A DNA stretch of 64,000 nucleotides from Thalia democratica (Eukaryota): contig OZ241826.1 in the NCBI GenBank assembly GCA_965202585.1, positions 15,562,001 to 15,626,000 on the forward strand. The letters are read 5' to 3'. Under the pieces are notes generated by a model that was not told where the DNA came from, ran no database searches, and saw nothing but the letters and a program-made list of their open reading frames with translations. The translations under genes were made by a program, and so were the position numbers. The first letter of the stretch is position 1, and every line of letters starts with the position of its first letter. Shown piece after piece: positions 46,101 to 64,000 of the stretch.

Positions 46101-49100
46101 TACTACTAGTGGATACATTGGAGCTACTGGCGAGCACGGACGTCTGCGAGGCTCCTGTTGAACTCGGCGGCTCCACCTGCTGGTGGCCCTCCAAAATCCT
46201 CAGGCTGTTGTCCTCTTCCGTCACCACGCGGATGTCCTCCTCCTCGCTTTGCTCTGTGTGACGTCATAATACGATCAACTTGATTTTTGTTTTATGTTGG
46301 AAAAAAAGTTATCTTGAAGCTAATTAATTTAACTTTACGAATTTTAAATATTTATTTAAAGGTATTTCTAATTTTTTGTTAAACAAAATTTTATTGTGTT
46401 CAAATGTTAACTGAATTTAATCTTTTGTGTTGGGAAAAAAGCTGTTTATTATTTTATTTAATTTTTTGCTATAAGGCACGTGAACAAATCATCATATGTT
46501 AGTAGACAGTCGCAATTAAAAATAAATTATTGTAATTTGATATATTAATTGTTTTGCTTGTTTTTAATTTATTGTTTTTTTAATCCAATTTTACCAAACT
46601 TAAAAAAAAAAACAAACAAAACTGCATAGTAAATTTTAATGTTTTAGATCTCATGTTTTAGGTCTTCTGTTTTGTTTTTTTTTCTCTTATAATTCTCCTT
46701 TACCACCAAGTATTCAATATATTTATATGCAAATTTAACATAGCTTGCATTCTATGTATGCAAACAAAGTTTGTTGTTATAAAACATTGAATAAAATTTT
46801 CAACTCCTTTTTATCTGAAAATTGTCGTATACAAAACGCTTATACACTCATTTAGAAGAGTTACTAAAAGTTTAAATATTTCAGTAACATCATCTTATAC
46901 TGCAGACATTTTCCAAAATAAAAAATGGTCAAATACTTTTTTTTCAAGGAAGTTTGTTGACACAAATCATTACATTTTTACGACCTTACAAAGGTTATCA
47001 AGCCATAACAAAATTGGATTTTATTTTATTTCAACCACAAATGAGTAATTCAAGTTCTTTATAACAATTTTATTCATCTACAAACAAAAACGTTGTTTGC
47101 AGAAAACTTTTAAGTTTAATTGCTTTATATAATTAATAAGTTCAAGGTAAGTTTAAATGTGATTGATTTTTCCTTAATTTAATTCTTGTTTTTATACTTA
47201 CTGGCTGCTTAATTATTAGTGATTGTATTGCACCATCAAAATTTGAATTAAATTATTAGAAATTACATAGCATTATTTTGGTTTTCTACTTGTTACTGTT
47301 TTAAAATTTCAAATTATTCAGTTTTAAAATTCTAAACATGGTATTTCTTTTCTATGAAATGTTTGGAAACTTGTATTTCGTAACAAAATGTTATTTTTTT
47401 CTGAGAATAAGTTTTATTTTTTAAATATACAAAACAAAGATCTTTACGGCACAAAGCTAAACAAATTCACATACACGCTGTTGTTTCACAAAGACTGCAA
47501 TTAATTCAATCAAAAATCGATAAACTTATAAACATCTACGCACATGTTTCTAACCTTTTATTTTTCATTAACTTGCTTGATATACCTTGTTTTGAAAAAA
47601 TATCAAGTTTAGAACATTATGTAAAATAAAACTTGTTTCTTTTTCAGTTCTCTGAACATAAGTTATTTTATATAAAACAATAAAAAGTGTTTTAAATTAG
47701 TTTTTCTTTATAATCAAATTTGTATTTTTCCATTTGTGTTAAATTATATCTACCAATATATTTATAACTTCTATAAATTAAATTTACTCTGACTTTTATG
47801 ATTAAAAACCTATGAACTTTTATTGGCAACTGAAAACTAAAGGATGCTGTATTGCTTTTAAGTATTGTAAAATGTATCGCCCAACTTAAGTTAATATTAT
47901 AATTATATACTTTCTTAAAATTTATTTGGCACCTTTGATGTATTTTATTACAAGCATTCAGCTTTTTGTTACTTTTCAAAGATAGTTTATAATTACCTTT
48001 TGTTAATTTATACTATAAATGTTTTGAGCTAGTTTACTTATTTATAAAAACTTTTTATAAATTTTCAAACAAACCATCTTCCTGATTTTCCTCGATGATG
48101 ATCCTGTTAATTTCGATGACCCGCGGGGGTCTCTCCTCCCCTGACAACCCGACCGGTTGCCTGGCAACGTTGATGACCGAAGTGTCGACCCTCGTATCTA
48201 CCGACTTCCCGCTTGACCTGCGAAGTTTTACAAACATGTGCGTTAGTATTTACTAAATAGCAAAAGAGTTGTTTTCAATTAAATCAACTAACAAACGAAT
48301 GATTTTTATTTAGATGATCAAACAACTACTCACTGTTTATTAACTAACAGTTTTAATAATTAATATTAGAGTAGAACTTATATTTGATGTGTAAATTTTA
48401 CCGAAAAACATTTATGTCTACTTCTCATATACATCATTTTCAAAATAGTACAGTGAAGTATTATTTTTTAAATAAAAGATTAGAGGCTCCTTAAGAAGTG
48501 ATATGAAGTTTTGATACAGACAAAAATAGGAATACCATCAATTTACAAATTCAGAATAAATCAAACATACTTGCAACAAAAATTGAAACAACAAAACAAA
48601 CTTGCAGTAAACATTTATATAAAAATTATATTTATATTATTTTTATTGTTTATATTATTTATAAAACACTACAATTAATATAATTTTTCAAACTTACTTG
48701 CAACAAACAGTGCTGGGGTCGTTGCCCAGCTGCTTCAGTTTCCTTAGCAACTCAATTAGCGCCTTCAGTGTTGGAACCCTCAATTTTTCCTGGTTCCGCA
48801 TCAAATCGTCCATCGCGTTTCCCAACGTTTGCGCTGTGTCGCCTGCGTAGTAACTTCGATTAGTTGCGTATGTTTTAATATTACCATAAGATTAAGCAAT
48901 TACATTTTTATCAGTATCAACGAAAAATATTTGTATCTATTTTAAGTGGATTTTTTTCTTCGAAGACTAAAAATCATCAATAATTAATAATGCTTATCAG
49001 TTTTCACAAAATATAGCCTAATTGTTTTCAAAGCGCTTTTAAGGTTAAGAATAAAATGCTCTTAAAACTAAATTAGGTACTTTTTAACTAAAATTCTTTT

Positions 49101-52100
49101 TTATTAAACAAAACAAACCGATGGGTTCAGCGTTTCTCCTTCTGCGCATGGCGGGTAGGTATTCAGGAGTAAGTAGGACGTTGAACAACTTCTCAAACGG
49201 GTCACAATTTAGGAAGGTTTCCAGCCCGGTTGAGTTCAAACACAAGGCACTGTTGAATGTTTTGACAATTAATAAATAATCAGGTATATTTTATATAAAA
49301 ATTAAAAAACTATTTATTACTTTACAGCAAACTAATTATTGAAACGCTTAAGAAACAAACTATTGATAATTGTTTATTTCATTTACACTAGTTTACTGAT
49401 TATTTTATTGATAATATTGTGAATTATTACTTGTTTATTCAGCAATAGAATTTTTAATTTTATTAGTTATATTGTTAATCAGTTTTTCAGTTAATTTTTA
49501 TCTCAAGGCTCTTAATAACTAAAAGGTTAAATTTGTGGCACCAAGTCAGTTTTACAAGTAGATTGTTATAATTTGTTTTCATCTTATTTAAACAATTAGA
49601 AATTTTATTTAAAATGATAGTTTTATTTTAAAGTTAATTCAGTTGCATAGTTTGTTTGGATATACTCCAACTTAAATTGTTTCATTTAATTCAATTATTT
49701 TGATGTTATAACATAAACAATTCAAATAAAAAAATTGTTATAAAACCACTTTTCATTTTGCAAAACAGATGTTTCTATTTTAATACTGTAGGTGCAATTT
49801 TTAATAACAGCATTCAATTGACAATTTACTGCAAGGTTCAATGACTTATCAAGTCAGGTGTAACAATTTAACAATGGATTGTTTATTTCATTCGCAATAA
49901 TTATTTAATTTTGATATACGTTTGAATTATACGTATAAGTTACGAAATATTGAACAAAGTTTTAGAAATAATTCAGTGTAATTAGACACAGCTAATGAAA
50001 ACAAGATTTGATAACAAACTAATTAAGCAAAACATGTTTACCAAATATGTAAGAACATAAAAGCTAATTAGATAAATGAGCTCAGCTTAGCGGATTAAGT
50101 TTATTTATAGATATCAAAATTTCTGATAATATTTTAGTTCGTAGAAAATCAAACAATTTATCAAAATTTTTAAACGACTAACTTTTTGTGGTTATATATT
50201 TTATTACTTAGAATTTTAATACAAATATAATTGTAAACAATGCTTTAATTTTAAAAATAATAGCTTGTATAATATTATTATTACCTGTAAAAGCATTAAA
50301 CCTAAAATCCACTTTAACTTTAAGTTTTTTTTTTGGTACTCTTTAAGTTTTTTTTAAATACTTTTTACTCACTCCAGTACATTATGCAATAAACACTCAA
50401 ACACCAGGTTTATGTTTCAGTTTAGCTTAAATAAATACATAAGTTTAAATAATTTTATTACACTTATATTTTTGAACCCACTTTAGTACATTAACGAATA
50501 TACAAACACTAGGTTTATGTTTTTGTTTAATGTAAGAAAATTTTAAATTTTAATTAATTTTATTATGTTAGGACTTACCTGTTAGACACATTAGGCAGTA
50601 TTATTATTTTATATTTAATATATTTTAATCACTTGAGTACATTATTCAGTTAACATACAAACACAAGATTTATGTTTAACTTTAAGTAAAATATATCTAA
50701 ATTTTTTATTATTTTATGATTTTGTAACATTTATTTTTAAACCAACCTGAGCACATTAGGCAGTGAAGCGAGCACTTCTCGGGTGGCCGGGGGATTTTTC
50801 ACCAACAACGAGTGCATTATGACGTCAGTGAGCTTTTTCTCCTGCAAGTACCTAAGCAAGGATGGTTCCTGGTACACGTAGTGAGTCACTACCTCCATCG
50901 CTGTGGATGGAAAAGATAAATTATTTTCTTTACAAGAACAATACTGATTATTTTACCAAAATTTAAAACGCTTACAAAATAAAGCAAAGCTTTAAAACAT
51001 TAGAATAAATATTTTTACTGACTACAGCAGTAGTTATTTTTAGTTACTAAAACACTTCCGAGTTATGCCTACCAGTCCTAAAATATTTCTTAGTCTTACG
51101 ATAGTAAGCATTTTAACCAATCTAGAAAAACAGTCTTATAGTTTTGTAACCATTAAAATCCCAAAATTTCAAGTATTTTTTTCGCTCTCAAATCAATCTA
51201 CGTTTAAATAACAAAAACAAACCGAGCAAGAAGAGCGGACTCCCGTAGAACTCTGCGTTGCCAATGATGTGCTTCAGTGATTCGGGCAGCGATCCCTGCA
51301 TCATGTTTCGCACCGTGTCGGTTACGGACTGGTTGTTCGAATCCATGATGGCTTTCTTCAGGAAGTTCAGAACCGATTTGAACAGGGCCTGGCGCTGCGG
51401 GAAGCATTGCACTCCTGTGTGGTAGTAGTTATTTTAGTTATTAATTTTTATTTTCGATTTAAAAGTTAAATTTTAAAACATTGTAGATATTGAATACTTA
51501 TTATTTTAATACGAAATCAAGAAACTATATTGAATTTAAATCTTATCAATATAAACTCAAAGAAGCTAAAATATGTTTTAAGATTGTTTAGGTGTTTAGG
51601 ACATGTATACAAGTGTCAAGTGGACTATTAAACATTCAAATGTAAAAAAAAATAAGTGAAAATTTCCATATCCTAAAGATGCTTAATTTCAGAAAACCAA
51701 AATCTTAAATTGCAATCTTAAGAGGAAAATACTTTTAGTCAGTACTTTTGTGCCTGGTGTTGCGAGAAGCATTGGACTCTTGGACTCCTGTGTGGTAGTG
51801 GATTGGTTTATTTTTTAAAATGGTCGCTTTGTAGTTTTTAATTTTTGCTGGCAACACATCAAACGATTAAATTTATATTTAACTAACGAGATTGTTTGTT
51901 TGGTATAAATGAAAAAATTTATTCATATCCAGTTGTTCAAAATAAATTTAATATGTGGAACAAAACATATATAATATATGATTGTTTTTATATTTTCATG
52001 TTATCCCAAAACTATCTACCAGGATTATAATTGTTCGAATCAACGTCCATACTTTCAGCGGATTGAATTAAATTTGAAAAAAATATAAATAAACAATTTA

Positions 52101-55100
52101 CCAGGTTTGTAAGTATTGGTGTCAACGTCCATACTTAATATTAGACATAATTAAATTTGTATAATTAAATAAATAAACAATTTACCAGGTTTATAGGTAT
52201 TTGTGTCAACATACATACTTTCAGCTTATTGGATAAGTTTATATTAATAAACAACATACCAGGTTTGTAAGTATTGGTGTCAACATCCATACTCTCGGCT
52301 GACTGGATCGTGTCAACTTCCATTTCTGTGTGGCTTGTGCTACCGCTTGAACTGGCTTCGTCTTTATTTAAAATTATTATACATAATAAATAACTGTATG
52401 AATCAACATAATCTCATTGTTATTACGAACTAGCACCAAAGTTTGTACAGCAACTAGTAACCATTAACTATCATGTTTTTAATTTCCAAGATATCAAATG
52501 ATCCAAAAAAAACTATAACACTTGGAAAAATACATTAGTTAAAAAAGTGATTTACCTCAATTTAAGTAGGTATACTCAAAACAATATACTACAGGCTTAT
52601 TACATTACTTAAAAGCAACCTGAATTTTAGTATGTGGGTAGTCAAAAAGTGGTGTTAATAAAAATAACACCTTGCTTAGTAGGGAAGATTACCTGAGTTT
52701 TAATCAGAAAGATAGTAACTGCAAGGTAACGCTTAAATATCTATCTTACTAACTAGTTTTAAGTAACATAAGTAACAAACCTGAATCTCAAGTGGGTACA
52801 AGTAGGTGCTTATATGAATATATCAACTAAAAACATAACAAATCTATGTTTTTAGAAGGAAGATGAAAATTACGAGGTGATTTTTATATATGTAATACCA
52901 CCTTGTATATATAATACTTAGTACAGTAGATTACCTGAATTCTTAGTAGGAAGGTGGTAACTACAAGGTATTAAATGTAATTAACACCAAACTAAATTCT
53001 TAGTAGGAAGGTGCACTCTTGCAATTTTGTACGCTCGTGCAAATTTGTACGCTCGTGCAAATTTGACAGCTACCCACTTATATAAGTGACATACTAACAA
53101 TTCAGCAAACAAACCTGAACTCTTAGTAGGAAGGTGGTAACTACAAGGTGGCGTCTTCTTCCTGCAAATGTCGACCTCGTGTTTCAGCCTGTCGATGAAC
53201 ACCTGCAATCCGTTGGCGTTCTGGAAGGACTGCCACTCTATGTTGGTGATGAGGTCGATCACCCGCACCGCCCTCGTCACAAACTGTTTAATGTTGTCTA
53301 GGTAAACAGGCTGCGTGCAATAAAAAATAAAAAAAAACTCGGTTGGTTTAAATAATTTTAAAACATCTAATTTAAGTAATAAGAGTTTAGTTCGTACCCT
53401 TTCGATTTTCAAAAATGTATACAGAACTTTTTTTTAATTATAAACGAACTTAATTAAAAACTAAGTATTTTTATAACTTATCGTTTTCTGTTCTTAACTA
53501 CAGATTTTAAGTTAATATGATAAAAAACTTAAAGATGTACAACTACATCAAGTGTGTTAGATGTATAACTACCAACAACACCAAAACTAACAGTGGTTTG
53601 CTCCTGCTGGTCGCCCATGTTAGTGACAACTGATAACAGTGGCACCATCATGCCGCTGTGCACCAGGGAAATGCCTCCTTGCTCGAAAGAGGACAGGTGG
53701 TAGAGGAAAGAGAAGAGAGCCGTGGCGAAGCTGTGCGGAAATTCCGCCGATCCGCCTTCTGTGTGAGTTATTTTGCGTAATTTTATTGTTACCATATCGT
53801 TTTAGATGTAAATTGAAGCGATACATGTTAAATTTATTAATTATTATTCTACTTTCTATGAACAATTTCTATTATAACCATATATAAGTTATGCAAAAGT
53901 AATTATGTTTTTAATTTTTTGGCGAAGCTGTGCGGGAATTCCGCCGATCCGCCTTCTGTTGTGAATATCATTTTATGCGAAAAAAAGTATGAGATTACAT
54001 TTACAGCTATTAATGCTTGAGTATTTTCTTACTACATTAACTTATTTCAATTTTGATTGAAAAGTTTTGCAGATTAATTTAGATCATTTAACGATCTGTT
54101 TTTTTTTTTTTGAATAAAACTAGGTGAAAATCCACTAATCCGCCTTCTGTTATTCAGAGTACTTTGTAAATTTATGTCGTGTGTAAGATAACGCTGGCAA
54201 TTAATTAGCAATCGAATTTTATTTAGCGGTTAATCCTTCTTGGTATGTTAAGGGTCCGACCGGATCAAAAATCAACAAAGTTCGATCAGAATTCTACAAC
54301 ACATAAATACTGTGCACTTCTAAAACAGGACATTCTTATTCAAGTTATTTTCAATGTTTGAACTAGTGCTGTTTAATTTTTTAAGTGGGCTAATAACCAT
54401 GTTTAAAACAACAATCGTACTTACGTTTATCTGATTTGGTCATGTTTTCAATGCATCTCCTCACTAAGACAGGCAGGAATCCGTGATACTGGGACATACC
54501 TGTGAAAAAATTTATATTAAAAAAATAAGGAAAAAAAAAGTCAAAAAGGTATAGTTAATCAACCACATTGAGCCACATGACACAACATGGTAGATACCTA
54601 TTTATACTAGATTTTTATTATAACTATATAACTAATACTGTCATATTATTTACCAGGCACTGAAACATACCAGTTAAAAATAAAGATTTAAATAGCTAAT
54701 AAAAAAATAATGAGCTACATGGTAGAAACCATGAGACATACCCGCCATTAACTCATATTATTAATAACAATATAGATTAAAATATTACATTACTTCCAAC
54801 ATACCTGTCACGTCTATAATTGAAGACAGCCTCGAAGGTCTATCTCTGTTGTCCAAGTGGACTATGGATGTGAGGGTCCTTAAAGCGGCAGCTTTAATGT
54901 CCTGTTTATATTAATTTTAATTTTAAATATAAATTATTTTTAGAGTCCTTTACTTTAATTTTAGCACTAAGACATTGATCAACTATGGGTTTTTTTTGTT
55001 ATTCTAATTTATCAATTTAATTTAAACACCTTTACGAGCCAAAAAATTTTAAAAGGCTTACTTATGTGTTATTTTTGATAAATTATATAAGTGTTTTTAA

Positions 55101-58100
55101 ATGTTTTTATTTGAAACAAAATACTAACGATGAGACTGTTGTCTTTTGCTTGCAACAGATCAACTAATTCTTCTGTGAATCCGTTATAAAGTATGCTTCC
55201 CACATTGTTCATATTTGAAGTGTACACCAATACACTTATTGCATGAAGCCTCGCTTGCACGCATTTTAATCTGTTTATTTAATTTATATTTAATTTTTTT
55301 TTTTTAATTTTAAATATTTATTTGAAGTTAAACACTAATGGCATGTTTCAAACCTAGTTTCGTGAAGAGCAACAAATATTAGTAGTTATACGTGAATGAA
55401 ATTTAACGTTAACTCAAGTTTATACTATTTTTGTATTGGTTATAGAATCAAAATAAGACTTTAAAAAATTTATTTAAAAGTTTATTCAAAAGAAGTTAAA
55501 AGGTGTAAATAACTAAAAAAATTTTTTTTTTTTTTAAAACCTAGTTTCGTGCTTGGCGAAGTTGTATGCGAGCCTGAGCCTGGTAAAAAGCAGCATTTTC
55601 GATTCCTCGGGCATCGTTGTGTATTTGTTGATCAACATTTCCATTATCTTCGATGGACTGTCGTTTAACTGTTAAGAAAAATTTAATAGTTAATCGATTA
55701 TTATTTGGTCACAGTTCATTTCTAACTTATATTGGTACCTGTTCTAATTTGGATTTAAAATATGATAAAGTTCTATATCTAATTTAGCTTTCAATTTGTT
55801 GCTGCTTAGTCTAATTTATAATTAAGCTGAACTTAGTTTTTTTATTTGAGCTGTTAAGCTTAATTTATAAAAATTATTTAACAAAACTCACTTCATGTAC
55901 ATTGGTCAAGTTAATGCAGGTGACGCCTGATTTTGTTTTTTCTGAAGGAATTTCGTGCTGTAGGGTGGTTGCACTGGGTGGGAAACTCTTAAAAGATAGA
56001 ACAAAACTCTTGAAAAGAAGGTAAGAAATAAATACTACTATGTCAGGATATGTATTGGTTTTCAATGGATTTATTTCAAAGTGTTAGATCATTTATCTAG
56101 TATATTAAACTTGCAGTAAGTTAAAAGTTTTTATCCATGTACAAATATATGGCTTGTAAAATGCTTTATACTAGTTATTTCTTTAACTACAATTAATTGA
56201 TTATTTATTGATAACAAACTTACAGATAAGGGCTATTTGGATAAACCAACCCAAATAATTAAATTTAAAAACTTATTATTTATTTTATTATAATAAACTA
56301 AAATATAATTGCTGGTTAAAACTAGATGCTATTCCAAATTATTAAACTTAAACTAATTATCTTCTATTAACAACAAACTTACAGATAAGGGCTGGTTTAA
56401 ACAAGACGTAGCCAGTCCGAATCCGTTTTCCTTACCTCCCCAACTCTGTATTTAAAACAATAAATTCAATTTATTTGTTAACTTATTATATTTCTTATTA
56501 TATTTGAAACTAATTGACATATAATACAAAACAAGCTCCTCGGAAGTTGTGTTATTTTTTTATTTATTCTGTTGAAATTTAATTCAATTTTTAATTTAAC
56601 TTTAAATGAAAATCTTAAGAAAAAGCTATGTTTAAATAAACCAGAACTATATTCTCTGCGTTAGAGTAGTCAAGTTGTTACGAATAATTTTATTTTTGTG
56701 CTTCGTTAAAATTAAATTCATTTTTTAATTTAATCTCAAACGTAAATACCGGAAATAAAAATTTAAATAAACCAGAATTGAGCTCTTCACGTCAGATAAG
56801 TGAAGTCGTTAATACAATTTTTTACTTCCTGAAATTAATAGTTATTCGTCTTAACTAAAAAAGATTGCTCAATTTACTGAAATGTAAAGAGCTTATTTAA
56901 ATAAAGATGTGCAATTTAAATATTTTATTTACTTTTTCTTAAATAAAATATTTAATTTTCACATTTTTATTTACCTCTTGAAATTTAAAATAATTAAAAA
57001 GCAGAAAGAGTACAAATAACTCAACTTACTTCGTTACAAAAAACAAAAAGCAACAAAAACTAATTAACCATGTGTACCTAAAATAAAAATTCACAAACAC
57101 ACTTTTGAACTGTACCCATTAATATTTGATGAGTTTTAAAACAATAGAGTAATTAAATTCATTATATCCAGTTTGAACTGAAAAACATTCTTTTTTGTAG
57201 TTTTTTAATTTGACTATGTTTAAATTTAGCAACATGCATGTGAATTTACGATATATTAAAATATACTACAAACTATCTGTAGTACGAAGAATAAATTACC
57301 CCCGAACTTGAATTAATTTATTTGAACTGAAAGGTTATTCCTTAGTTATTAATTTAAAGTTGTTTTACCAGATGTTTGAAATAACTTCAAATTAGTATAA
57401 AGTAAATTAAAACTGAAATTTGATATTTTCGTCATTCTTAATTTATGTTGCTCAAAACAGCTTAGACGCAAATTAACAAATTTGAACTGAAAAGAATGTT
57501 TTTAATTTGTCTTAATTTTGTGTTTAAACCTTTTTGCGATGTTGAAGTGAAATATTTGAAATGCCCAACTAAATTGCAAATAAGCAGCTGAAGTAGTTAA
57601 GCATGCAATTTATATCACCGCAATACCTGCAGGATAGGTAAAACTTTATATGTTGATTTACAAGTGTTAATTAATTTTTAAGGTAAACAAATTTTTTGTT
57701 CACCTTAAAACATGTGTGAATACCTTTCAGCTGTTACTTATTTTCGATAAAAATAAGCCTTTTTTAACACATCAGAGCTGGGTTAACTTTTATTATAATA
57801 TTTTTTTATTGCTTAGTTTTTTTTTTTTAATTTCTTTTATATATTTGTGTACAATTGTGTTTTTTATTTTATAAATTAACTTTAAATAAGCTTTAAGATA
57901 CCTTACAACTAACGTTTTAATGCTTTAAGCATAATGTGATCAAAATAAGTAGTATGTTTAATACTTTTAAAAGTTCAAGGTATTTTATCTTTCTTATGTG
58001 TGAAAAAATTTGTTGATATACATGTAGTGATTGATTGAAATTACTTAATTTAAATCAATCTGAAGATAAATTATCAATTAAACTCAGTTAAACCCAAATG

Positions 58101-61100
58101 TTTATGTTATAAACGTAATAATATTATTTAAAACCTGTTGATTTAATTTTTATTGTTTTCTCTGTGTTAACAATTTAATTACTTGACGTTCATCTAAACT
58201 GTATTCAAAAACAGGTTCATTAGCAGATTGTTGAACATTTTCTGCTAATTTAAGTGCTAATAATTTGCAACAAAAACACGAATGATTTGAGCATATTAAT
58301 CTCAGTGATATTTATAATGTGAGAATTTTTTTAACCTAATTACAGCTATTAATTTCAAACAAATTTTAATTGCAAATACTCGACTAACTTGTCTGTTTGT
58401 AATTATACTTTCTAATTATTTGTAATAAATCACAGGATACAGTTGCGTTATAGATTATCTTTTAAGAGTACTTACTGGATACTGCTTTTTCAATTTTCTT
58501 ACAACTTTGTGTAAACAATTTCTTGTTTTCATTGATGAGGTGTTTTGCACGTTTGTTTTGAACATTTCGAACTTTAGAATGTGTTTGAAACAAAAATACA
58601 GTTATCATAACTTTTATGCATAAATGTTGAAATACTAATTTAAAAGCTGTCAGCAACTTAAATTTAGTTGTTGCAAGATCTATTTATATACTGAACGTGG
58701 ACTTTTTGTTTGCAATTAAAACAGATTTAAACACACAACTCTATTTTAATTGTTAATTTAAGTTGTCACTTCAACAATTTATTTTGTTGTCATTTTTAAA
58801 TAGAATGTTTTGAATGTAAACATTGTGCTTACTTATTGTTTGTTTCCAAAACATTCACTTATTATTTGACATTGTGGTAAGAAGTGATAACTTTAATAAT
58901 TCATACCTGATATGTTGATGTTTAAATCTAATAGGTTTACAAAATGCTTGCATTAAAAACATATAAATATGTTTACCAAAAACTTAAGCGGCTTAAAAAG
59001 CATTTGATTGTTATTAGAAATTAAACACTTGAATGCTTTTAATATGTAATAAGCTTAATTTGTATAAAGGTATCACAAGATTTAAAAATTAAGCATAGGA
59101 GAAATAAAATAACATCGAGTTTTCAACATATTTATTTTCTCGAATTTTCATGTAAACTTTATTTTTGTTTACATAAGAAGATTTAGTTTAAGTCATTAAA
59201 ATTGGACTTTAAGATGATGAATAACTTGTTTATTTTAACGATTATAGCCATAGGGGTAAATATGTTTTGCATTTTTTATATTTATAACCTACTATCCGTC
59301 TTTTACCAACTTTTTAAAACCAAAGTTTTTTTTTTAAATACAAACTTTAAATTTTCAGAGTTTTATAGGTACTTTATGGAAGGCATCAAATAATAAGCCT
59401 AAAAATATTGTTTTACTTAAAACATATTTCCTATTATTAGTTCAAATAAAAAAACTTATTTCCCTACTAATGTCTACTTTCTCAAAAAATCACTAAACTT
59501 TAGCTTGTTTACATAAAGTCTAGTGTGCGTTTGTCAAAAAACCATTAAAACAACAACTGTTATACAAACTTAATATTTATTGTAATGATTATTTATACAG
59601 TGGTTTCAGTCAAACAGTCACTAGTCTCAGCACTGGGTTGATAATATATTGTACAAGGTTTTATTATTTCAAAAATTCACAACTCACTCAAGTTAAATAT
59701 TATTTAATTAAAAAACAACTACAGATCTCAAATTTTAGATTTGGAGACGAATATAAAACATTACAACTTCTCTTAATTTATTGTAAAAAATTAAAATACT
59801 CTTTACTTGTGCATACTGATCATTAGGGTCAAAGGGGAGGATATAAAACTTTTTTTCATTATTTACTATCTTTAATTTATATCTTGAAACACGATTCATT
59901 CGAAAACATTTTCATTGAGCAAACAAGTAAAATGTATTTCAGCTAACCCTTAACAACTAATTTTCTCAGATTAAAAATTAGTTTTTCAGAATGTAATTAA
60001 TATCAACATAACAAACCTCTCCCAACTAGGCTCTCCAGCAATAATCAGTAACTTATTTACTATATGTTATCTTATTCTGTACTAATTGATGCTGATATGA
60101 CTAAGATTTTTTAGATTAATGATTGTGGAGTTTTCAATATGATTAAAACAACATGATTTGATGCTATATAAACTATCAAACCAAATTTTAACTGTAATAA
60201 AAGTAATTGAAAGGGTGTTATTGATAGACTTTATTTAATTATTTTACACATCTAAGTTCTTACACATAGTTTTATGCTGTACAAATAAATCAAATCAAAT
60301 AATGCTTTAATAAATGTAACTGAAATGTTTAATTTTTTGTTATATCAACAAAACAAACCTCTCCTAGATGGGAGATAATATTTATACTAACAATTAAAGA
60401 AAGACCATAGGTTAGGGGGTATTTTTAATAAACTTTTTTTAATACAAATATCATCAAAAACAAACCTCTCCGAGGTAGGACAGCCTCTCCAGAAGGGGGT
60501 TCTTCTGCTTGTCGGCCAGCCTCGACAGGAAGTTGCTCCTCTTGCTGAAGACGTACAGAAGGTTCAAAACGCTCAGAATGATGTCGAGCTTGGTGGAGGA
60601 AAGCAGGGCGGTGAGGTGCTGAAAAAAAATTAGTTTGAAGGAAAGATATTGCTAAAAAATAACCTACAAAGAAACAAAACGAAATGCTGGTTTTAATGTT
60701 TTATAAATTAATTAAAATTAAGTTTAAATTAAAATTTATGTATTTAAAATTGTCAGTTGAAATAAGAAATATTGCTCTAAAAGAACACTTTGTGCGAAGA
60801 AACAAGGAATAAAATATTGGGTTTGAACAATTGTTTTAATGAACAATATAAAATATAGTATCACATATTTTTGTAATAAAAATAAACAAATGTTACCGTA
60901 AATGGAAAATTCTTATGGTTTTTTGTTTTGTATTGAATAAAAGTTTACTGCTTCAGCATGCACAATGCAACTTTTATTAAACATAAATTACCACCTACTC
61001 ACCATTGTATAAATTCAAAACAAAAATACACTAATCACATACCTTCAACAAACAGAAAAAAATTTACTTAAAACATAAGACTGTTGTTTTCAATAAACTT

Positions 61101-62101
61101 TACATAAAACATTTACAGATAAAATAACAATTGAACTTAAATGTTCGGTTCAATGTTAAAGTTGTCAAATTTATTTTTTACTTAATAATAGCAAACTACT
61201 TTACAGTGTACTATTTTTTTGATCAAGTTATCCAACTGGGACTTTTTTAAGAACTTTTCAATGAGTAGCTTGCAAACATAACTTCATTGTAGCAGACAGG
61301 TGTGTATTGAAAAGTTTTAAATTAAACACTTAAGGATAAGCAATACGCATGTAGAACAAACTTTAAATATACCCGTTTTATTCATGTAAACTTCTTCCCT
61401 ACTAATTTATTTAGAAACAAAACAGACAAACCACATACAAGCGTACATTTCTCTAACTTCACCTAGAAAAATGTTTCTAACCTCTACATAGTTGCACAGG
61501 TAAAAAATACTTTATATTCAATTTAGTCCCTACATATATTGTATAAGATAAACCTGTTTACCTCTAAAGAGTTGTACAGATGCCTATTGAAGGAACATTT
61601 GATCAATAGTGATGTGAAACGGAGTTTAAGTTGCACTAGTGAGCAAATCTGATCTACTTAACTCAAAAATATACAGATACTAACCTCTACAGAGTTGTAA
61701 AGATGCCTACTGAACGAATACTCGATCAATAGTGGTGTGAAATGGAGAATGAGTTGCACCAGTGAGCAAATCTGATCTACTTAACTTAATAATATACAAA
61801 TACTAACTTCTACAGAGTTGTAAAGGTGTCTGCTGAACGATTACTCGATCAGCAAGGATGTTAAATGTAGGATGAGTTGCACCAGTGAGCAAATCTGATC
61901 TACTTAACTTAAAAATACATATTCTAAATACTAACCTCTACAGAGTTGTACAGGTGTCTGCTGAACGAATACTCGATCAGCAAGGATGTGAAATGGAGGA
62001 TCAGTTGCACTAGTGAACAAATCTGCTCGTCTGTGTTCACCCTCAACATCCACTTGGTGTCGTTGGTGGTGCTGCAAGCTCGCGCGAGGATGTCGTCGAA
62101 T
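1582..62101 (-). CDS. HUWE1: HUWE1-like HECT/UBA/WWE E3 ubiquitin ligase, partial multi-exon gene (64 coding exons in window; both ends outside window)
   Basis: Manual splicing gives an unbroken 8870-nt frame with GT-AG introns. Peptides match my recollection of human HUWE1: [142 protein letters not shown]. Confidence 0.95.
4172..4386 (-). CDS. HUWE1: HUWE1 exon 63
   Basis: [16 protein letters not shown]...; charged coiled segment. Confidence 0.88.
4939..5059 (-). CDS. HUWE1: HUWE1 exon 62
   Basis: [21 protein letters not shown] (HUWE1 RW.EEC.VL...DCV motif). Confidence 0.9.
5274..5397 (-). CDS. HUWE1: HUWE1 exon 61
   Basis: LLEPVAANG...FASMLP. Confidence 0.78.
5550..5653 (-). CDS. HUWE1: HUWE1 exon 60
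   Basis: VNTPNQE...NQSVFH(R). Confidence 0.8.
5867..6057 (-). CDS. HUWE1: HUWE1 exon 59
   Basis: [11 protein letters not shown]...MRQNQ. Confidence 0.85.
6368..6529 (-). CDS. HUWE1: HUWE1 exon 58
   Basis: [10 protein letters not shown]...PISI; phases fit. Confidence 0.8.
6862..7030 (-). CDS. HUWE1: HUWE1 exon 57 (acidic region)
   Basis: [12 protein letters not shown]...LFVQLEDLF. Confidence 0.85.
7347..7477 (-). CDS. HUWE1: HUWE1 exon 56 (acidic region)
   Basis: [11 protein letters not shown]...DDDEDDD. Confidence 0.85.
8235..8318 (-). CDS. HUWE1: HUWE1 exon 55
   Basis: GSNDMDTDP...NDSM; phases fit. Confidence 0.75.
8743..8791 (-). CDS. HUWE1: HUWE1 exon 54
   Basis: [16 protein letters not shown]; tag/gtaatt, phases fit. 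Confidence 0.72.
10216..10320 (-). CDS. HUWE1: HUWE1 exon 53
   Basis: ILCRW...NPSASTDEN. Confidence 0.83.
10321..10436. repeat. Four ~29-bp tandem units (ttgaatacttatttgtaaaatt) abutting the exon 53 acceptor
   Basis: Read directly from sequence. Confidence 0.85.
12551..12770 (-). CDS. HUWE1: HUWE1 exon 52
   Basis: [34 protein letters not shown]. Confidence 0.93.
13458..13708 (-). CDS. HUWE1: HUWE1 exon 51
   Basis: [31 protein letters not shown]. Confidence 0.9.
13989..14087 (-). CDS. HUWE1: HUWE1 exon 50
   Basis: [13 protein letters not shown]. Confidence 0.88.
14517..14647 (-). CDS. HUWE1: HUWE1 exon 49
   Basis: [17 protein letters not shown]. Confidence 0.9.
14880..14988 (-). CDS. HUWE1: HUWE1 exon 48
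   Basis: HPYGQHFGP...SSPEDS; phases fit. Confidence 0.75.
16273..16481 (-). CDS. HUWE1: HUWE1 exon 47
   Basis: [12 protein letters not shown]...[10 protein letters not shown]. Confidence 0.85.
16797..16989 (-). CDS. HUWE1: HUWE1 exon 46
   Basis: [22 protein letters not shown]. Confidence 0.9.
17368..17551 (-). CDS. HUWE1: HUWE1 exon 45
   Basis: LTR...[36 protein letters not shown]. Confidence 0.92.
17801..17928 (-). CDS. HUWE1: HUWE1 exon 44
   Basis: [26 protein letters not shown]. Confidence 0.9.
18117..18261 (-). CDS. HUWE1: HUWE1 exon 43 (WWE domain, second part)
   Basis: [29 protein letters not shown]. Confidence 0.94.
22851..22943 (-). mobile_element. Possible hAT-type MITE terminus
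   Basis: Minus strand begins CAGGGTTGCCAC followed by repeated (A)CCTGGAAAAA/AACCTGGAATT subterminal motifs; no partner TIR found. Confidence 0.4.
22979..23179 (-). CDS. HUWE1: HUWE1 exon 42 (WWE domain, first part)
   Basis: [10 protein letters not shown]...[15 protein letters not shown]...[12 protein letters not shown]. Confidence 0.94.
26143..26270 (-). CDS. HUWE1: HUWE1 exon 41
   Basis: [23 protein letters not shown]...ITP. Confidence 0.87.
26779..27066 (-). repeat. 82-bp tandem repeat: three intronic copies of the last 42 nt of exon 40 plus donor
   Basis: Units start at 26779, 26861, 26943 and 27025. Confidence 0.95.
27025..27177 (-). CDS. HUWE1: HUWE1 exon 40
   Basis: IDHSASTL...[14 protein letters not shown]. 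Confidence 0.88.
27636..27717 (-). CDS. HUWE1: HUWE1 exon 39
   Basis: [11 protein letters not shown]...; follows the VYR/CDL motif. Confidence 0.88.
27763..27943 (-). repeat. Three intronic copies of acceptor plus first ~35 nt of exon 39
   Basis: Direct alignment to 27681-27720. Confidence 0.93.
28681..28784 (-). CDS. HUWE1: HUWE1 exon 38
   Basis: [26 protein letters not shown](R). Confidence 0.87.
29051..29116 (-). CDS. HUWE1: HUWE1 exon 37
   Basis: [22 protein letters not shown]. Confidence 0.78.
29326..29358 (-). CDS. HUWE1: HUWE1 exon 36 (33-nt micro-exon, may be optional)
   Basis: tag|[11 protein letters not shown]|gtgagt; phase 0-0, so not required for frame. Confidence 0.6.
29636..29751 (-). 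CDS. HUWE1: HUWE1 exon 35
   Basis: EDDGRMIDP...DQYPLMM; phases fit. Confidence 0.78.
30091..30288 (-). CDS. HUWE1: HUWE1 exon 34
   Basis: acidic/Pro linker with QEGE(S/T)PPQD repeats; phases fit. Confidence 0.8.
30602..30824 (-). CDS. HUWE1: HUWE1 exon 33 (UBA domain and UIM-like helix)
   Basis: [15 protein letters not shown]...AVQHLL...[11 protein letters not shown]. Confidence 0.93.
31016..31140. repeat. (TA)n microsatellites and a 24-bp perfect inverted repeat
   Basis: 31045-31068 is the reverse complement of 31117-31140, with a (TA)n centre. Confidence 0.9.
31339..31564 (-). CDS. HUWE1: HUWE1 exon 32
   Basis: [10 protein letters not shown]...EENIQQ, leads into UBA. Confidence 0.85.
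31988..32032 (-). CDS. HUWE1: HUWE1 exon 31
   Basis: [14 protein letters not shown]; cag/gtaagt, phase 2-2. Confidence 0.75.
32126..32247 (-). CDS. HUWE1: HUWE1 exon 30
   Basis: [11 protein letters not shown]...; cag/gtcagt, phases fit. Confidence 0.75.
32538..32687 (-). CDS. HUWE1: HUWE1 exon 29
   Basis: AMQLLWD...[20 protein letters not shown]. Confidence 0.88.
33060..33244 (-). CDS. HUWE1: HUWE1 exon 28
   Basis: [27 protein letters not shown]; alternative in-frame acceptor would start at 33256. Confidence 0.88.
33677..33753 (-). CDS. HUWE1: HUWE1 exon 27
   Basis: [13 protein letters not shown]...EIP. Confidence 0.87.
33997..34119 (-). CDS. HUWE1: HUWE1 exon 26
   Basis: [30 protein letters not shown]. 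Confidence 0.93.
38887..39024 (-). CDS. HUWE1: HUWE1 exon 25
   Basis: [18 protein letters not shown]...PERL. Confidence 0.85.
39414..39577 (-). CDS. HUWE1: HUWE1 exon 24
   Basis: [28 protein letters not shown]. Confidence 0.9.
39840..39970 (-). CDS. HUWE1: HUWE1 exon 23
   Basis: [11 protein letters not shown]...RATKKLK; phases fit. Confidence 0.82.
40207..43273 (+). mobile_element. 5'-truncated non-LTR retrotransposon (CR1/L2-like LINE), antisense in HUWE1 intron 22
   Basis: Partial APE endonuclease ([44 protein letters not shown]) and RT. 3' UTR has a stem-loop (43216-43235), AATAAA and an (AAT)n tail. Candidate TSD atacc at 40202-40206 and 43274-43278. Clade assignment is from motif recall only. 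Confidence 0.88.
40520..42889 (+). CDS. LINE ORF2 (endonuclease C-terminal part plus reverse transcriptase), 789 aa open; frameshifted from upstream EN segment 40207-40490
   Basis: [66 protein letters not shown]. Confidence 0.93.
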   Translation: MPNIDWRIPSTDFNKPHECFLNFCTDNFLTQVIENPTHKNGNILDLIICNHFGLDRIISHSTNFPLTNTCDHNLLSLKIKIENKVVPIAKKVSYDYKKADFKSINDFLSKINWTSLFKNSENLQHFYDQFISSIQISIKRFVPIFSKNNKSKKYPSHIKKLLKEKANLYKKSKTNKSLLIKYKNKSKEYQLAVKKYNFEYENKFCKNPNLKKFYSYVKSKLKLNNSIHLLYDNDKNKTVTSDFEIATLFNINFQKVFKKDESYQSFKLPQKNCNKMQNFFITYEDIISSINHLKDKIIRTPENIPPYYIKHVIQSIIFPLSLIFNCSLELSDVPKQWKTSFIIPVHKKGNIHDALNYRPISLTSGFSRIYEHIVSVKILNHLFDNKLLTNKQFGFVPNRSSTIQLLTCLHSWLVPYLKNEFTKVVYTDIQKAFDSVSHKRLLKILNQYGLHESLIDWFDNFLNNRSQRVLINNTLSDSLTIYSGVPQGGVVGPLLFLIYINDICSNIDIKSELSLFADDAKIFSQSNTSLQLSLDNIYLWLKTRKLNLNPSKCKILTINKKESSPTDLLINNIKLPEIKVFKDLGIYNSKDLKWNEHINYLYKIAKTTCYQILKSFKTNSASILTKLFKTYVRPKLEFSTQIWSPHLKKDINKIESVQRSFTRHICNRCNISYTSYNDRMIKFGLKSLEYRRWEFDLLILYKIINGKYKSFFNQFFNFSQNKYQLRGNNLKIKCKHDFQNSQWQGAFFHRAKAMWNRLPQDIVSCERVEQFRLKLKRFDLNTINTSKIN
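43278..43380 (-). CDS. HUWE1: HUWE1 exon 22
   Basis: [22 protein letters not shown]; donor gtatta abuts LINE tail. Confidence 0.9.
43507..43560 (-). CDS. HUWE1: HUWE1 exon 21
   Basis: [18 protein letters not shown]. Confidence 0.85.
43874..44051 (-). CDS. HUWE1: HUWE1 exon 20
   Basis: PTCVLMRDQ...[17 protein letters not shown]. Confidence 0.88.
44344..44468 (-). CDS. HUWE1: HUWE1 exon 19
   Basis: SYQFQQRQ...[14 protein letters not shown]; phases fit. Confidence 0.8.
44897..45079 (-). CDS. HUWE1: HUWE1 exon 18
   Basis: [10 protein letters not shown]...[11 protein letters not shown]. Confidence 0.9.
46057..46253 (-). CDS. HUWE1: HUWE1 exon 17
   Basis: QSEEEDIR...[13 protein letters not shown]. 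Confidence 0.88.
48075..48217 (-). CDS. HUWE1: HUWE1 exon 16
   Basis: GC-rich open frame, phases fit (SSGKSVDTR...EENQED). Confidence 0.82.
48698..48842 (-). CDS. HUWE1: HUWE1 exon 15
   Basis: [17 protein letters not shown]...LGNDP. Confidence 0.92.
49119..49249 (-). CDS. HUWE1: HUWE1 exon 14
   Basis: ALCLNSTGL...[22 protein letters not shown]. Confidence 0.93.
50747..50900 (-). CDS. HUWE1: HUWE1 exon 13
   Basis: [14 protein letters not shown]...[14 protein letters not shown]. Confidence 0.93.
51223..51414 (-). CDS. HUWE1: HUWE1 exon 12
   Basis: [22 protein letters not shown]...[13 protein letters not shown]. Confidence 0.93.
52020..52225 (-). repeat. Three intronic copies of the exon 11 3' end plus donor
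   Basis: 52020-52065, 52102-52135 and 52186-52225 align to 52260-52305. Confidence 0.92.
52260..52361 (-). CDS. HUWE1: HUWE1 exon 11
   Basis: linker [22 protein letters not shown]; phase 1-1 fits neighbours; aag acceptor. Confidence 0.8.
53115..53310 (-). CDS. HUWE1: HUWE1 exon 10
   Basis: [14 protein letters not shown]...[11 protein letters not shown]. Confidence 0.92.
53592..53758 (-). CDS. HUWE1: HUWE1 exon 9
   Basis: [20 protein letters not shown]. Confidence 0.92.
54425..54499 (-). CDS. HUWE1: HUWE1 exon 8
   Basis: [19 protein letters not shown]. Confidence 0.92.
54805..54901 (-). CDS. HUWE1: HUWE1 exon 7
   Basis: [17 protein letters not shown]...LSSIIDVT. Confidence 0.92.
55129..55270 (-). 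CDS. HUWE1: HUWE1 exon 6
   Basis: [16 protein letters not shown]...[14 protein letters not shown]. Confidence 0.93.
55541..55668 (-). CDS. HUWE1: HUWE1 exon 5
   Basis: [12 protein letters not shown]...[13 protein letters not shown]. Confidence 0.9.
55892..55987 (-). CDS. HUWE1: HUWE1 exon 4
   Basis: [12 protein letters not shown]...; aag acceptor (in-frame alternative 21 nt upstream)/gtgagt. Confidence 0.85.
56383..56445 (-). CDS. HUWE1: HUWE1 exon 3
   Basis: [21 protein letters not shown]; cag/gtaagt. Confidence 0.92.
60466..60618 (-). CDS. HUWE1: HUWE1 exon 2
   Basis: HLTALLSS...[14 protein letters not shown]...LSYLGE; cag/gtttgt. Confidence 0.93.
61562..62025 (-). repeat. Tandem array (about 123-128 bp period): three intronic copies of the last 90 nt of exon 1 plus donor
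   Basis: Direct alignment of 61562-61651, 61685-61774 and 61808-61897 to 61936-62025. Confidence 0.95.
61936..62101 (-). CDS. HUWE1: HUWE1 exon 1 (window numbering)
   Basis: [10 protein letters not shown]...[16 protein letters not shown]; cag/gttagt. Confidence 0.93.
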
Positions 62102-64000
62102 CTGTGACGTCATAATAGTCATTTATTTATATATTATTATTTACCGGTTTATTTACTAACATTTATTGACTTATTTTTTGTTATTTATGGTTTTAATTAT
62201 TACAATTTATTATTTAATTTATTTTCAGATCTGTTTAATATCTATTAATTTATTACTACTATTTATTTACTTATGGTTTTTTTTTGTTACAATTTTATTT
62301 ATAATTAATTAATGTTTGCGGCACAGCAAGCTGGTGCAAGGATGTGGTTGGTGAGTGACAATTCAACATTTTTTATTCATTTCAATATGCTATTACATTG
62401 TTAATATTTTAGCAGTTAAAAATATTAAGTAAGTTGTTAAATATGATCTGTTAAAAATATGGTTTTTTATTTGTTTTATTACAATATATAAAAATAAAAA
62501 TTGAGAAAAAGGTCCAGTCTATAACAGGCTTCAAAGCCAGCCAGCCAGCCAGCTTAAATATTAATAACAGTCATTTTGTTTTCACCCAGTATATTTTAGA
62601 ACAACTTTATATAATTTTTTATTTTGGCTCACATGTGGCAATGTTTTATATGTAATGTGGCCAACTTATTGAAAATGGACTTTAGCAAGCTGGTCTACTA
62701 TTTTTAAGCTTAGAAAAAATATTAGTATGAACTATTATATGAAAATGTTAGTTTTAAATTAGAAATATTTGTTTCACAGGCCAGACGTTTGAATTTTTGA
62801 TGTTTTTTTTAACTACTTGATAACTAAAATACTTAAAAGTATTTGAAATAAAGAAAATAAAGAAATATTTGGTAAAAGCCAGGACAAGCGTAATATTAAT
62901 TTATCATAAATTTACTAAACTTCTCACAGATTATTTTATCAGCTCTTTGTATGTTGACTGTGTTTTATAAAAAATCAAGCCTGTATTGTTTTGTAAGATT
63001 CTTTTTTGCACATTTATATTTATAACTTACACCGCACAAAGTTTTTCAGGTGCAAAAAAAAAGTTCCTCAACTTATGACTGTACCTATTTTTACACAAAA
63101 AGTCAAACATAGTCGGTAATTTTTTATTATGTATCAGCGACATCCAATAATTAACCAAAGTAAATCAGTGATAACTTTTTTCTTCAATTAAAATTTGTTA
63201 AATATAAATTTCATAATTTTAGACCAAAGAGGTTAAATTTTATTTTTCACAAGTTGTTCATGTTCTTAATACTCTTTTAATAGCTACCAGCTAGTTTAAC
63301 AGTTTAAATTAAGAATCAGGAAGGTTCAATGAGTGCTAGTTTCATGATTTAACCCAAGTTGTTGTTATTGATATTATAATATTTATAAAATGATGATGAA
63401 CATGTATCTAATTGAATAACATTCAGTGTGTTTAAGTTTTATAATTGCTGATTAAAATAATTATATTTTTAAGCACACTTTTTTAAAGGCTGTAGTAGAC
63501 AAGTTTGTTAACAATAAATAATAGAAAGCTTTATAGTATAGCAACATATTTTACATAATTGAAAAAATAACCACAAGTAAAACATATGTTTTTAGATTAA
63601 ATTCAGTTAGGCTTTTAAAAATAAGTAATTGTCAATTATCTTTGTTAAAGCAAATTTAAAATTATCATAACTAAATTTCATTGCATTTAACAATCTTAGA
63701 CTTGTCTATATTTAATTAATATGTGTTTGTAATAATAAAAATTAAAGCAAAACTTATACTTAAAACCATCATTAATTAATATTTAAAAATATTATTTATA
63801 TTAAAAAAATAAACTTTTAAAGATAAACACAAATTAAATGTTTCAAAGTTAGCTATGAAAAGTTGATACTCTTGTTGCAAAGCTTTTTGTTTTTTAAATT
63901 ATACTTTTTTGTATTTTGCTACAATAATTGTCTACTTTTTTAAGCAGTATCATACTTTTTATTTGACATTTATTATTTTCAACAATAATGACAGAAAGTT

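Follow-up and report, generated by a model that had tools for sequence, protein, structure and literature searches.

Tandem duplications that span an exon–intron boundary are known from amphioxus as mirages, minisatellite-like arrays that were found in Adh3, the globin genes BflGb6 and BflGb9, troponin C, and PGBD5 (PMC3087553, PMC3902484). In these arrays, splicing is undisturbed, the unit number varies by haplotype, and the units undergo a concerted evolution from which the edge of the array is excluded (PMC3087553, PMC3902484); a bias toward silent sites is not mentioned for the amphioxus mirages in either publication. The human F7 gene carries in its intron 7 a 37-bp variable number tandem repeat, the first element of which spans the donor of exon 7 (Borensztajn et al., 2006, PMC1557585), and experiments with this system showed that the identical downstream pseudo-donors are silent and that the most upstream site is picked in the 5′-to-3′ direction (PMC1557585). 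Furthermore, the model of Rogers, as discussed in PMC3087553, describes intron gain by tandem duplication of an exon segment that contains AGGT. Here, we report on a tandem array in the HUWE1 gene of the pelagic tunicate Thalia democratica, in which the end of an exon, together with its 5′ splice site, recurs within the following intron. The array lies in a stretch of 64,000 nucleotides (assembly GCA_965202585.1, contig OZ241826.1, forward-strand positions 15,562,001 to 15,626,000), termed the window, whose first letter is position 1. A preliminary description of this DNA had read the copies as a time series of silent recoding of the exon, and had proposed that they could be cassette exons. 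Our analyses lead us to regard the array as a boundary-spanning minisatellite of the mirage type, whose silent bias most likely comes from the standing silent variation of the exon, reshuffled among the units.

An array of exon ends that is spliced out from the first donor

On the minus strand, Tandem Repeats Finder detected an array with a period of 123, 3.7 copies, 87% matches, and a score of 614 at 61560-62025, and a repeat search returned four in-register copies of 123 nt at 61545-62041 with spacings of 123, 123, and 128. The 25-mer at the donor end forms a family of five members in the latter search, the fifth being a stub at 61477-61501. Each repeat unit consists of 90 bases that correspond to the last 30 codons of the HUWE1 exon, plus a GT donor and 33 intron bases, or 38 intron bases after the real exon (Table 1). 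Every copy opens with CAG and closes at a GT; with a slash marking the border, the donor sequences from the exon to copy 3 are GAG/GTTAGT, GAA/GTTAGT, GAG/GTTAGT, and GAG/GTAAAC, and the stub has GAG/GTTAGA. The donor 11-mer of copy 2 (GAGGTTAGTAT) is identical to that of the authentic donor, and an AG (tagatcag/) precedes each unit, 33-38 nt past the previous donor and within an A/G-rich spacer. The copies are devoid of the first 24 codons of the exon, and within the exon there is no donor 5′ of the repeated part.

The tandem array is physically real and not a product of the assembly. Run X1 contains a 491-nt short-read contig, made without recourse to the assembly, that is identical to 61288-61778 and runs through the stub, copy 3, and copy 2. 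A contig of the 2016 marine-metagenome run X4 runs across 61440-61699 with 19 differences, and a Tara Oceans metagenome contig (L005, see below) carries tandem units as well. A search for sequences that span the array, as suggested in the preliminary description, thus had a positive outcome, and the three copies that had been proposed there were recovered by Tandem Repeats Finder, by the repeat search, and by a recount of the codons; the stub was recovered by the repeat search and is now set at 61477-61501. The CAG start and GT end of all copies, already recognized in that description, were reproduced on the minus strand.

All copies lie within an intron that is removed. Run X3 behaves as RNA of the same organism, with RNA-like contigs, and in a 576-nt X3 contig, 60466-60618 is joined directly to 61936-62105, with an unmatched end that runs into the following HUWE1 exon. 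The X3 depth is 0 over 61401-61800, and the two bins with the exon have depths of 5.63 and 9.09, which equals the expectation for the exon alone (65/200 and 105/200 of 17.3). No copy has RNA coverage in the X3 contigs, from which rare isoforms drop out. The intron with all its copies is thus spliced out via the first donor (61936), and the downstream pseudo-donors are silent. As the donor 11-mer of copy 2 is identical to the real one, the donor appears to be chosen by its position and not by the strength of the site. An in-frame TAG is present at the fourth codon past the first donor, and leaky use of a later donor would therefore truncate the message. A reading of the sequence further indicates that stops would be encountered when a copy is entered in the phase of the preceding exon.

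Three further uses of the copies were considered and rejected. Mutually exclusive tandem exons are not feasible with copies that lack the first 24 codons of the exon, with no donor upstream of the repeated part, and with stops on entry; splicing of all units in series, with 33-nt mini-introns, does not agree with the TAA in copy 1 and the direct RNA junction; and a substitution of the exon end by a copy would need a donor ahead of the repeated part, where none is found.

At its other end, the X3 contig extends 7 nt beyond the conserved acceptor (cacag/) and ends at ~62105 in the CRE-like palindrome TGACGTCA (within 62099-62112), which is conserved in L005. The extension may come from unspliced RNA or from transcription that starts internally, or it may mark a break in the contig.

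Table 1. Coordinates of the HUWE1 exons, the intron, the array units, and the acceptor-side copy in the window
Feature	Position	Strand	Basis or remark
HUWE1 coding exon, corresponding to ~residues 60-117 of human HUWE1	61936-62098	minus	acceptor cacag/ at 62099; donor GAG/GT at 61936/61935
Unit 0, repeated last 30 codons of the exon	61936-62025	minus	repeat analyses and codon recount
Unit 0, intronic part, first 38 intron bases (GTTAGTAT...AGTTAAGTAGAT)	61898-61935	minus	in-frame TAG at fourth codon
Copy 1, 90 exon-derived bases (61808-61897) and 33-nt spacer	61775-61897	minus	TAA at codon 19; donor GAA/GTTAGT; no RNA contig depth
Copy 2, 90 exon-derived bases (61685-61774) and 33-nt spacer	61652-61774	minus	open frame; one S-to-P replacement; exact X1 contig
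Copy 3, distal unit	61562-61651	minus	6 replacement codons in the reference; also in L005, there with one replacement only
Stub, last 20 exon bases and GTTAG	61477-61501	minus	occurs in L005 too
Intron removed in RNA-like contig, holds all copies	60619-61935	minus	X3 contig
Next HUWE1 exon	60466-60618	minus	RNA-like contig
Decayed acceptor-side copy of the first ~15 codons of the exon (TNHILAPACCAANIN)	62315-62365	minus	sequence reading

Silent differences, a second haplotype, and exchange among the units

When the codons were recounted on the minus strand, the exon and copy 1 were found to have 8 differences, all at codon position 3 (0/0/8 over the three positions), with 6 silent changes, one change from F to L, and one from Y to a stop. 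Copy 2 differs at 13 sites (3/0/10), with 10 silent codons and a single S-to-P replacement, and copy 3 at 18 sites (4/4/10), with 8 silent codons and 6 replacements. The excess at position 3 has a binomial P of 1.5e-4 for copy 1 (8/8) and of 1.6e-3 for copy 2 (at least 10/13). Copies 2 and 3 have CTA TTG and AGG CAT in common, with a block of seven silent differences. Each number that had been given for the three copies in the preliminary description, as well as the codon set shared by copies 2 and 3, was obtained again. The units are mosaics: copy 1 equals copy 2 over codons 1-10 and equals the exon over codons 14-24, and the third positions of codons 4 and 8, at a distance of 12 nt, occur in all four combinations across six unit sequences. 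Judged from the sequences, this four-gamete pattern would require exchange among the units or recurrent mutation. The edges of the array escape the exchange, as decay is most advanced in the distal copy 3 and the stub.

The contig L005, with a length of 868 nt, aligns through the upstream intron, the exon, the array, and the downstream flank. The HUWE1 frame is uncalled for this species in the protein collection, and L005 was found via a longer overlapping out-of-frame open reading frame (ORF). Its divergence from the reference is 14.4% in the upstream and 5.6% in the downstream flank, so it belongs either to a hyperdiverse species, as a second haplotype, or to a very close sibling. L005 may share its project with X4, and both are counted as one source independent of the reference. 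In L005, the exon is followed by the first 13 nt of a unit, by one unit that is broken through an internal deletion, and then by the copy 3 orthologue and the stub. Copies 1 and 2 have no clean counterparts there, and the end of the broken unit and its spacer resemble copy 1; the array is thus structurally polymorphic between haplotypes.

Over the repeated 30 codons, the exons of the reference and L005 differ by six changes, each of them silent and at position 3 (pS 0.29, pN 0), and the other 24 codons hold two more differences, also silent. Reference copies 1 and/or 2 carry four of the six L005 variants (TGC, CTG, CTC, ATT), and the L005 exon allele is matched exactly by 3/8 of the copy 1 differences and 4/13 of the copy 2 differences (binomial P 0.013 and 0.003). 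A reading in which the silent recoding records past states only is therefore not supported, as these four codons live today in the L005 exon. The distal copy 3 evolves differently: its versions in the two haplotypes are separated by 10 changes, spread over the codon positions as 3/3/4 (5 codons with a replacement, 3 silent), and the exon has 0/0/6 (Fisher P 0.026). The preliminary description had named silent changes on the exon branch, together with neutral decay of the copies, as the outcome that would speak against its reading, and this is largely what is seen, with L005 placing several of the silent changes on the exon side and with the 3/3/4 distribution of copy 3. At the sites of the replacements in reference copy 3, the undecayed base is found at 61587 and 61600 in runs X5 and X4 and at 61596 in X5 only, and in L005 copy 3, the codon is still undecayed at four of the six sites, while a fifth bears a milder change. 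The replacements in reference copy 3 are thus recent and haplotype-specific.

Two side observations concern the variation at this locus. An alternative X1 contig at 60642-60941 has 25 mismatches and 2 gaps in 300 nt, which corresponds to ~8% heterozygosity within one individual. In run X5 (organism B), the summed contig depth is 282 at 61801-62000 and 66 at 62001-62200, with ~100-175 in neighbouring bins; X5 may carry more units of the copy 1 or exon type, a mere hint as contig depths are a poor measure.

The locus combines the properties that characterize a mirage, namely a tandem minisatellite, an authentic first border, undisturbed splicing, variation by haplotype, and exchange from which the edges escape. 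According to the mechanism that we propose, a segment of ~123 bp, comprising the last 30 codons, the 5′ splice site, and ~33 intron bases, would have been duplicated in tandem, and its units would have been amplified and reshuffled via unequal crossing-over or gene conversion. The spliceosome would use the first, authentic donor only, and the copies would be plain untranslated intron. The very high polymorphism (flanks 6-14% apart) would maintain many silent variants of the exon, while replacement variants would be purged by selection. Exon and copies would form a small family that trades short tracts, with selection acting on the exon alone, and any copy that is born from, or overwritten by, an exon allele would import silent variants and have its replacement changes wiped out. 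Between such exchanges, the copies would decay neutrally at all positions, fastest at the distal end. As an outcome, nearly all differences between the copies and their cis exon would be silent, without any selection on the copies themselves. Here, we infer both the exchange mechanism and its rates.

A forward simulation was run with four units, of which unit 0 alone was selected, at a theta of 0.1, with exchange set to 200x the mutation rate and recombination to 5x the mutation rate per bp. Its results came close to the observations, with a silent exon–copy divergence of 0.19 (observed, 0.23-0.33), a replacement-site divergence of 0.015 (observed, 0-0.05), a silent polymorphism of the exon of 0.20 (observed, 0.20), and a single-copy or flank diversity of 0.08 (observed, 0.06-0.14). 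The simulated silent-to-replacement ratio was 9-12 with recombination between the units and ~2 without. With its assumed exchange and recombination rates, the simulation suggests that exchange would be sufficient, and it is not a proof.

Several observations weigh against an explanation by exchange. The array was read in two haplotypes only, and L005 possibly stems from the same Tara data as X4. The B-type block shared by copies 2 and 3 (TCA/CCA CTA TTG ... AGT AGG CAT, with the seven silent differences) is in none of the available exon versions (reference, L005, X3). L005 copy 3 has 15 silent changes and 1 replacement relative to its cis exon (pS 0.74, pN 0.014), a more coding-like pattern than would be expected from simple decay, and each of its three lineage-specific changes is silent. 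The four private changes of copy 1 are all at position 3 (P ~0.012 under uniformity). Furthermore, with a ratio of only ~2 in the simulation without recombination, the model depends on a recombination rate per bp no lower than about the mutation rate, a value that was assumed, and the contig-level RNA data are compatible with rare inclusion of copies. The B-type block, the coding-like L005 copy 3, and the private changes of copy 1 can be read as imports from unsampled exon alleles, and with two haplotypes, some direct constraint on the copies is conceivable. A paralogue or a second HUWE1 locus was also considered as the origin of the B-type codons, but this idea was not retained.

Alternative explanations for the silent bias

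If the copies were successive fossils of the exon in a single lineage, with silent changes on the exon branch and no exchange, several aspects of the array would be expected. TGC is found in all copies and in the L005 exon, so that the TGT of the reference looks derived, and CTC is similar; the distal copy is the most decayed and present in both haplotypes; and the codon set of copies 2 and 3 is unseen in living exons. The mosaic units, which failed the four-gamete test over 12 nt, do not fit such a series, and neither does the fact that the ATC of copy 1 and the ATT of copy 2 are both living exon alleles. Since copy 2 arose, the exon would have undergone ~11 silent changes in its ~21 silent sites versus 1-2 changes in the 90 sites of copy 2, and silent sites would need to evolve ~25 times faster than neutral DNA. 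We therefore consider a pure time series doubtful. What stands of it is that the copies have kept exon codon states unlike those of today's cis exon and that the distal copy is the most decayed; a clean order of the units is not supported by the mosaics. A highly heterozygous genome also raises the question of an assembly artefact, in which allelic exon versions have been stacked in tandem, as the copies differ from the exon in the way alleles do, and the heterozygosity is ~8% in the alternative X1 contig. Such stacking is extremely improbable, as assembly-independent de Bruijn contigs of X1 run from copy 3 into copy 2 exactly, and as tandem units bordered by the same distal flank also occur in contigs from a different sample (X4, L005).

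The copies might also be present or recent cassette exons of 87 nt in phase 0-0 that are selected at the protein level, with copy 1 as a poison exon, which was the proposal of the preliminary description. In agreement with this, the reading frame is open in copy 2 and in copy 3 of either haplotype, and a single replacement stands against 10-13 silent codons in copy 2 and in L005 copy 3. Each unit is also preceded by an AG (tagatcag) and followed by a GT, and the donor 11-mer of copy 2 equals the real one. Yet the RNA contig joins 61936 directly to 60618, with zero depth on the copies, the candidate acceptors are only 33-38 nt past the previous donor, and the unit that L005 has in place of copies 1 and 2 is broken by deletions. 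Of the six replacements in reference copy 3, three are absent from X5 and/or X4 and four from L005, which is a sign of recent decay, and copy 3 orthologues differ at positions 3/3/4. Inclusion of a copy would merely repeat 29 residues, the array is not present in the three other assemblies with the orthologous intron (L001, L002, L004), and the periods of similar copies elsewhere in the gene (71, 74, 82, and 95 nt) are not divisible by three. Protein-level selection on cassettes is thus highly unlikely, and the cassette proposal is not supported.

Two arguments on the silent bias were discarded. Gene conversion had at first been dismissed on the ground that exchange would erase silent differences, which overlooked the polymorphism term; the simulation with recombination gave the ratio of 9-12. 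AT-biased mutation at GC-rich third positions was estimated to raise the share of position 3 only ~1.25-fold, which is too little.

It is unlikely that the copies, as members of one exchanging family with the exon end, are more than debris. If they were, transfer from copy to exon would feed clusters of silent variants into the exon, and intact copies could serve as a backup in cis; a weaker variant of this idea is that copy 2 or 3 is a regulated cassette with low-level inclusion. Copy-to-exon transfer would account for the six silent differences in the repeated 30 codons as compared to two in the other 24. An intact copy such as copy 2 could then replace a damaged exon end after a deletion of one unit, and throughout the genome of this animal, mirages would generate silent hypervariation and provide exon borders with a backup in cis.

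The HUWE1 context, further local repeats, and comparison with known systems

The exon was assigned to HUWE1 by a sequence search of the PDB, in which its frame matched the HUWE1 chains 9plq/7jq9 with an E-value of 3.4e-10 over query residues 3-58, and its match to the Pfam family DUF908 is weak (E 0.0034, under the curated cutoff). The label "exon 1", used in the preliminary description, is not tenable by homology, as the HUWE1 alignment begins at RFD (human residue 60), 20 codons upstream of the presumed start ATG, and as a relative, L002, has two coding exons upstream of the orthologous exon (MKVDRNKLKK... and ...CELYHWVDILDR). The part upstream of that ATG has one difference in 49 bases between the two haplotypes, which is silent, and the adjacent intron differs by 14%. 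Orthologous exons in L001, L002, and L004 have equal borders, start after an acceptor, and end with SVE/gt. A tblastn search with the two upstream HUWE1 exons of L002 against the window gave no credible match in 62100-64000, and the upstream exons probably lie beyond the window. Further HUWE1-like sequence, including a WWE domain, is found in other open frames down the window. The orthologous introns of L001, L002, and L004 contain no such array. Tara and other metagenome contigs of a different, AT-rich pelagic relative (L002:300-3007 and L003) show a compact HUWE1 5′ end, with some introns of only ~45-95 nt and no boundary repeats. In the intron preceding the exon, ~260 nt upstream, the acceptor-side copy listed in Table 1 has lost its AG and differs at all codon positions. 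The exon therefore bears mirage copies at both borders.

Small tandem duplications are frequent in this window. A minus-strand self-comparison revealed 38 local repeat pairs, spaced 64-265 nt apart and distributed over ~27 loci, for example at 34061-34218, 45882-46102, 26769-27068, 27682-27952, 10024-10242, and 52009-52308. Purely intronic repeats have differences that are flat over the three phases, such as [11,11,9] or [8,7,7], whereas about a dozen other repeats copy a HUWE1 peptide beside its exon and have the same silent bias, one of them with 7 changes of which none is in the protein; the periods of these repeats are mostly not multiples of three. The flat phases of the intronic repeats, together with the silent bias and non-triplet periods of the exon-end repeats, argue that junction-spanning copies are the tolerated subset of frequent small tandem duplications.

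In the next intron, an element at 59893-59964 has a contig depth of 30-50x that of its flanks in three DNA runs (3449, 984, and 4781 versus ~100, 15, and 150), and this element is a high-copy dispersed repeat. Rfam detected no family in 58000-64000, this element included. A degenerate pattern of the last 14 codons plus GT had 0 matches in metagenome contigs of the JGI, none of 8 ORFs of the region was present in the protein collection by exact look-up, and a plus-strand ORF gave no candidate when used as protein query. A literature search for salp genome papers that describe such repeats found none.

Our analysis implies that a signal of evolution "as if coding" can arise in untranslated DNA that exchanges with a selected neighbour in a hyperdiverse population, which calls for caution when hidden exons are called by silent-to-replacement ratios. 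Previous examples of mirages come from a small number of lancelet genes and a single human intron, and the present case adds a gene of a pelagic tunicate with about a dozen more in the same 64 kb. This suggests that in some marine chordates, frequent small tandem duplication commonly gives rise to mirages as a by-product. Arrays of identical silent donors are also natural test cases for the choice of the first 5′ splice site.

In conclusion, the array is an ordinary member of an obscure known class that is new in its host lineage and gene. With the amphioxus mirages, it shares the boundary-spanning unit, the authentic first unit, normal splicing, the variation by haplotype, the involvement of both borders, and a polymorphic marine chordate as host. 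It differs from them in subphylum and gene, and in a unit of 30 codons that is long enough to expose the silent bias. As in F7, an authentic donor is followed by identical pseudo-donors and the first one is used; the F7 unit is shorter, with little coding sequence, and the choice of the donor was determined by mutagenesis there, whereas one RNA contig points to it here. By analogy, the use of the first donor in HUWE1 is likely due to a 5′-to-3′ choice of the most upstream site. Gene/pseudogene pairs such as CYP21A2/CYP21A1P exchange sequence by gene conversion, and families of this kind are treated by the multigene-family coalescent theory of Ohta and Innan. As in these families, a selected and an unselected copy share neutral variants, neutral diversity is inflated, and harmful variants survive in the unselected copy only; in contrast to them, the partners here are 90-nt exon ends inside one intron and not whole genes, and the high diversity makes the polymorphism term dominate. 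Like the duplications of the Rogers model, this tandem duplication takes in splice signals, and its copies are potential raw material for new borders, but no new intron or exon is in use, and the duplication holds an existing border instead of creating one.

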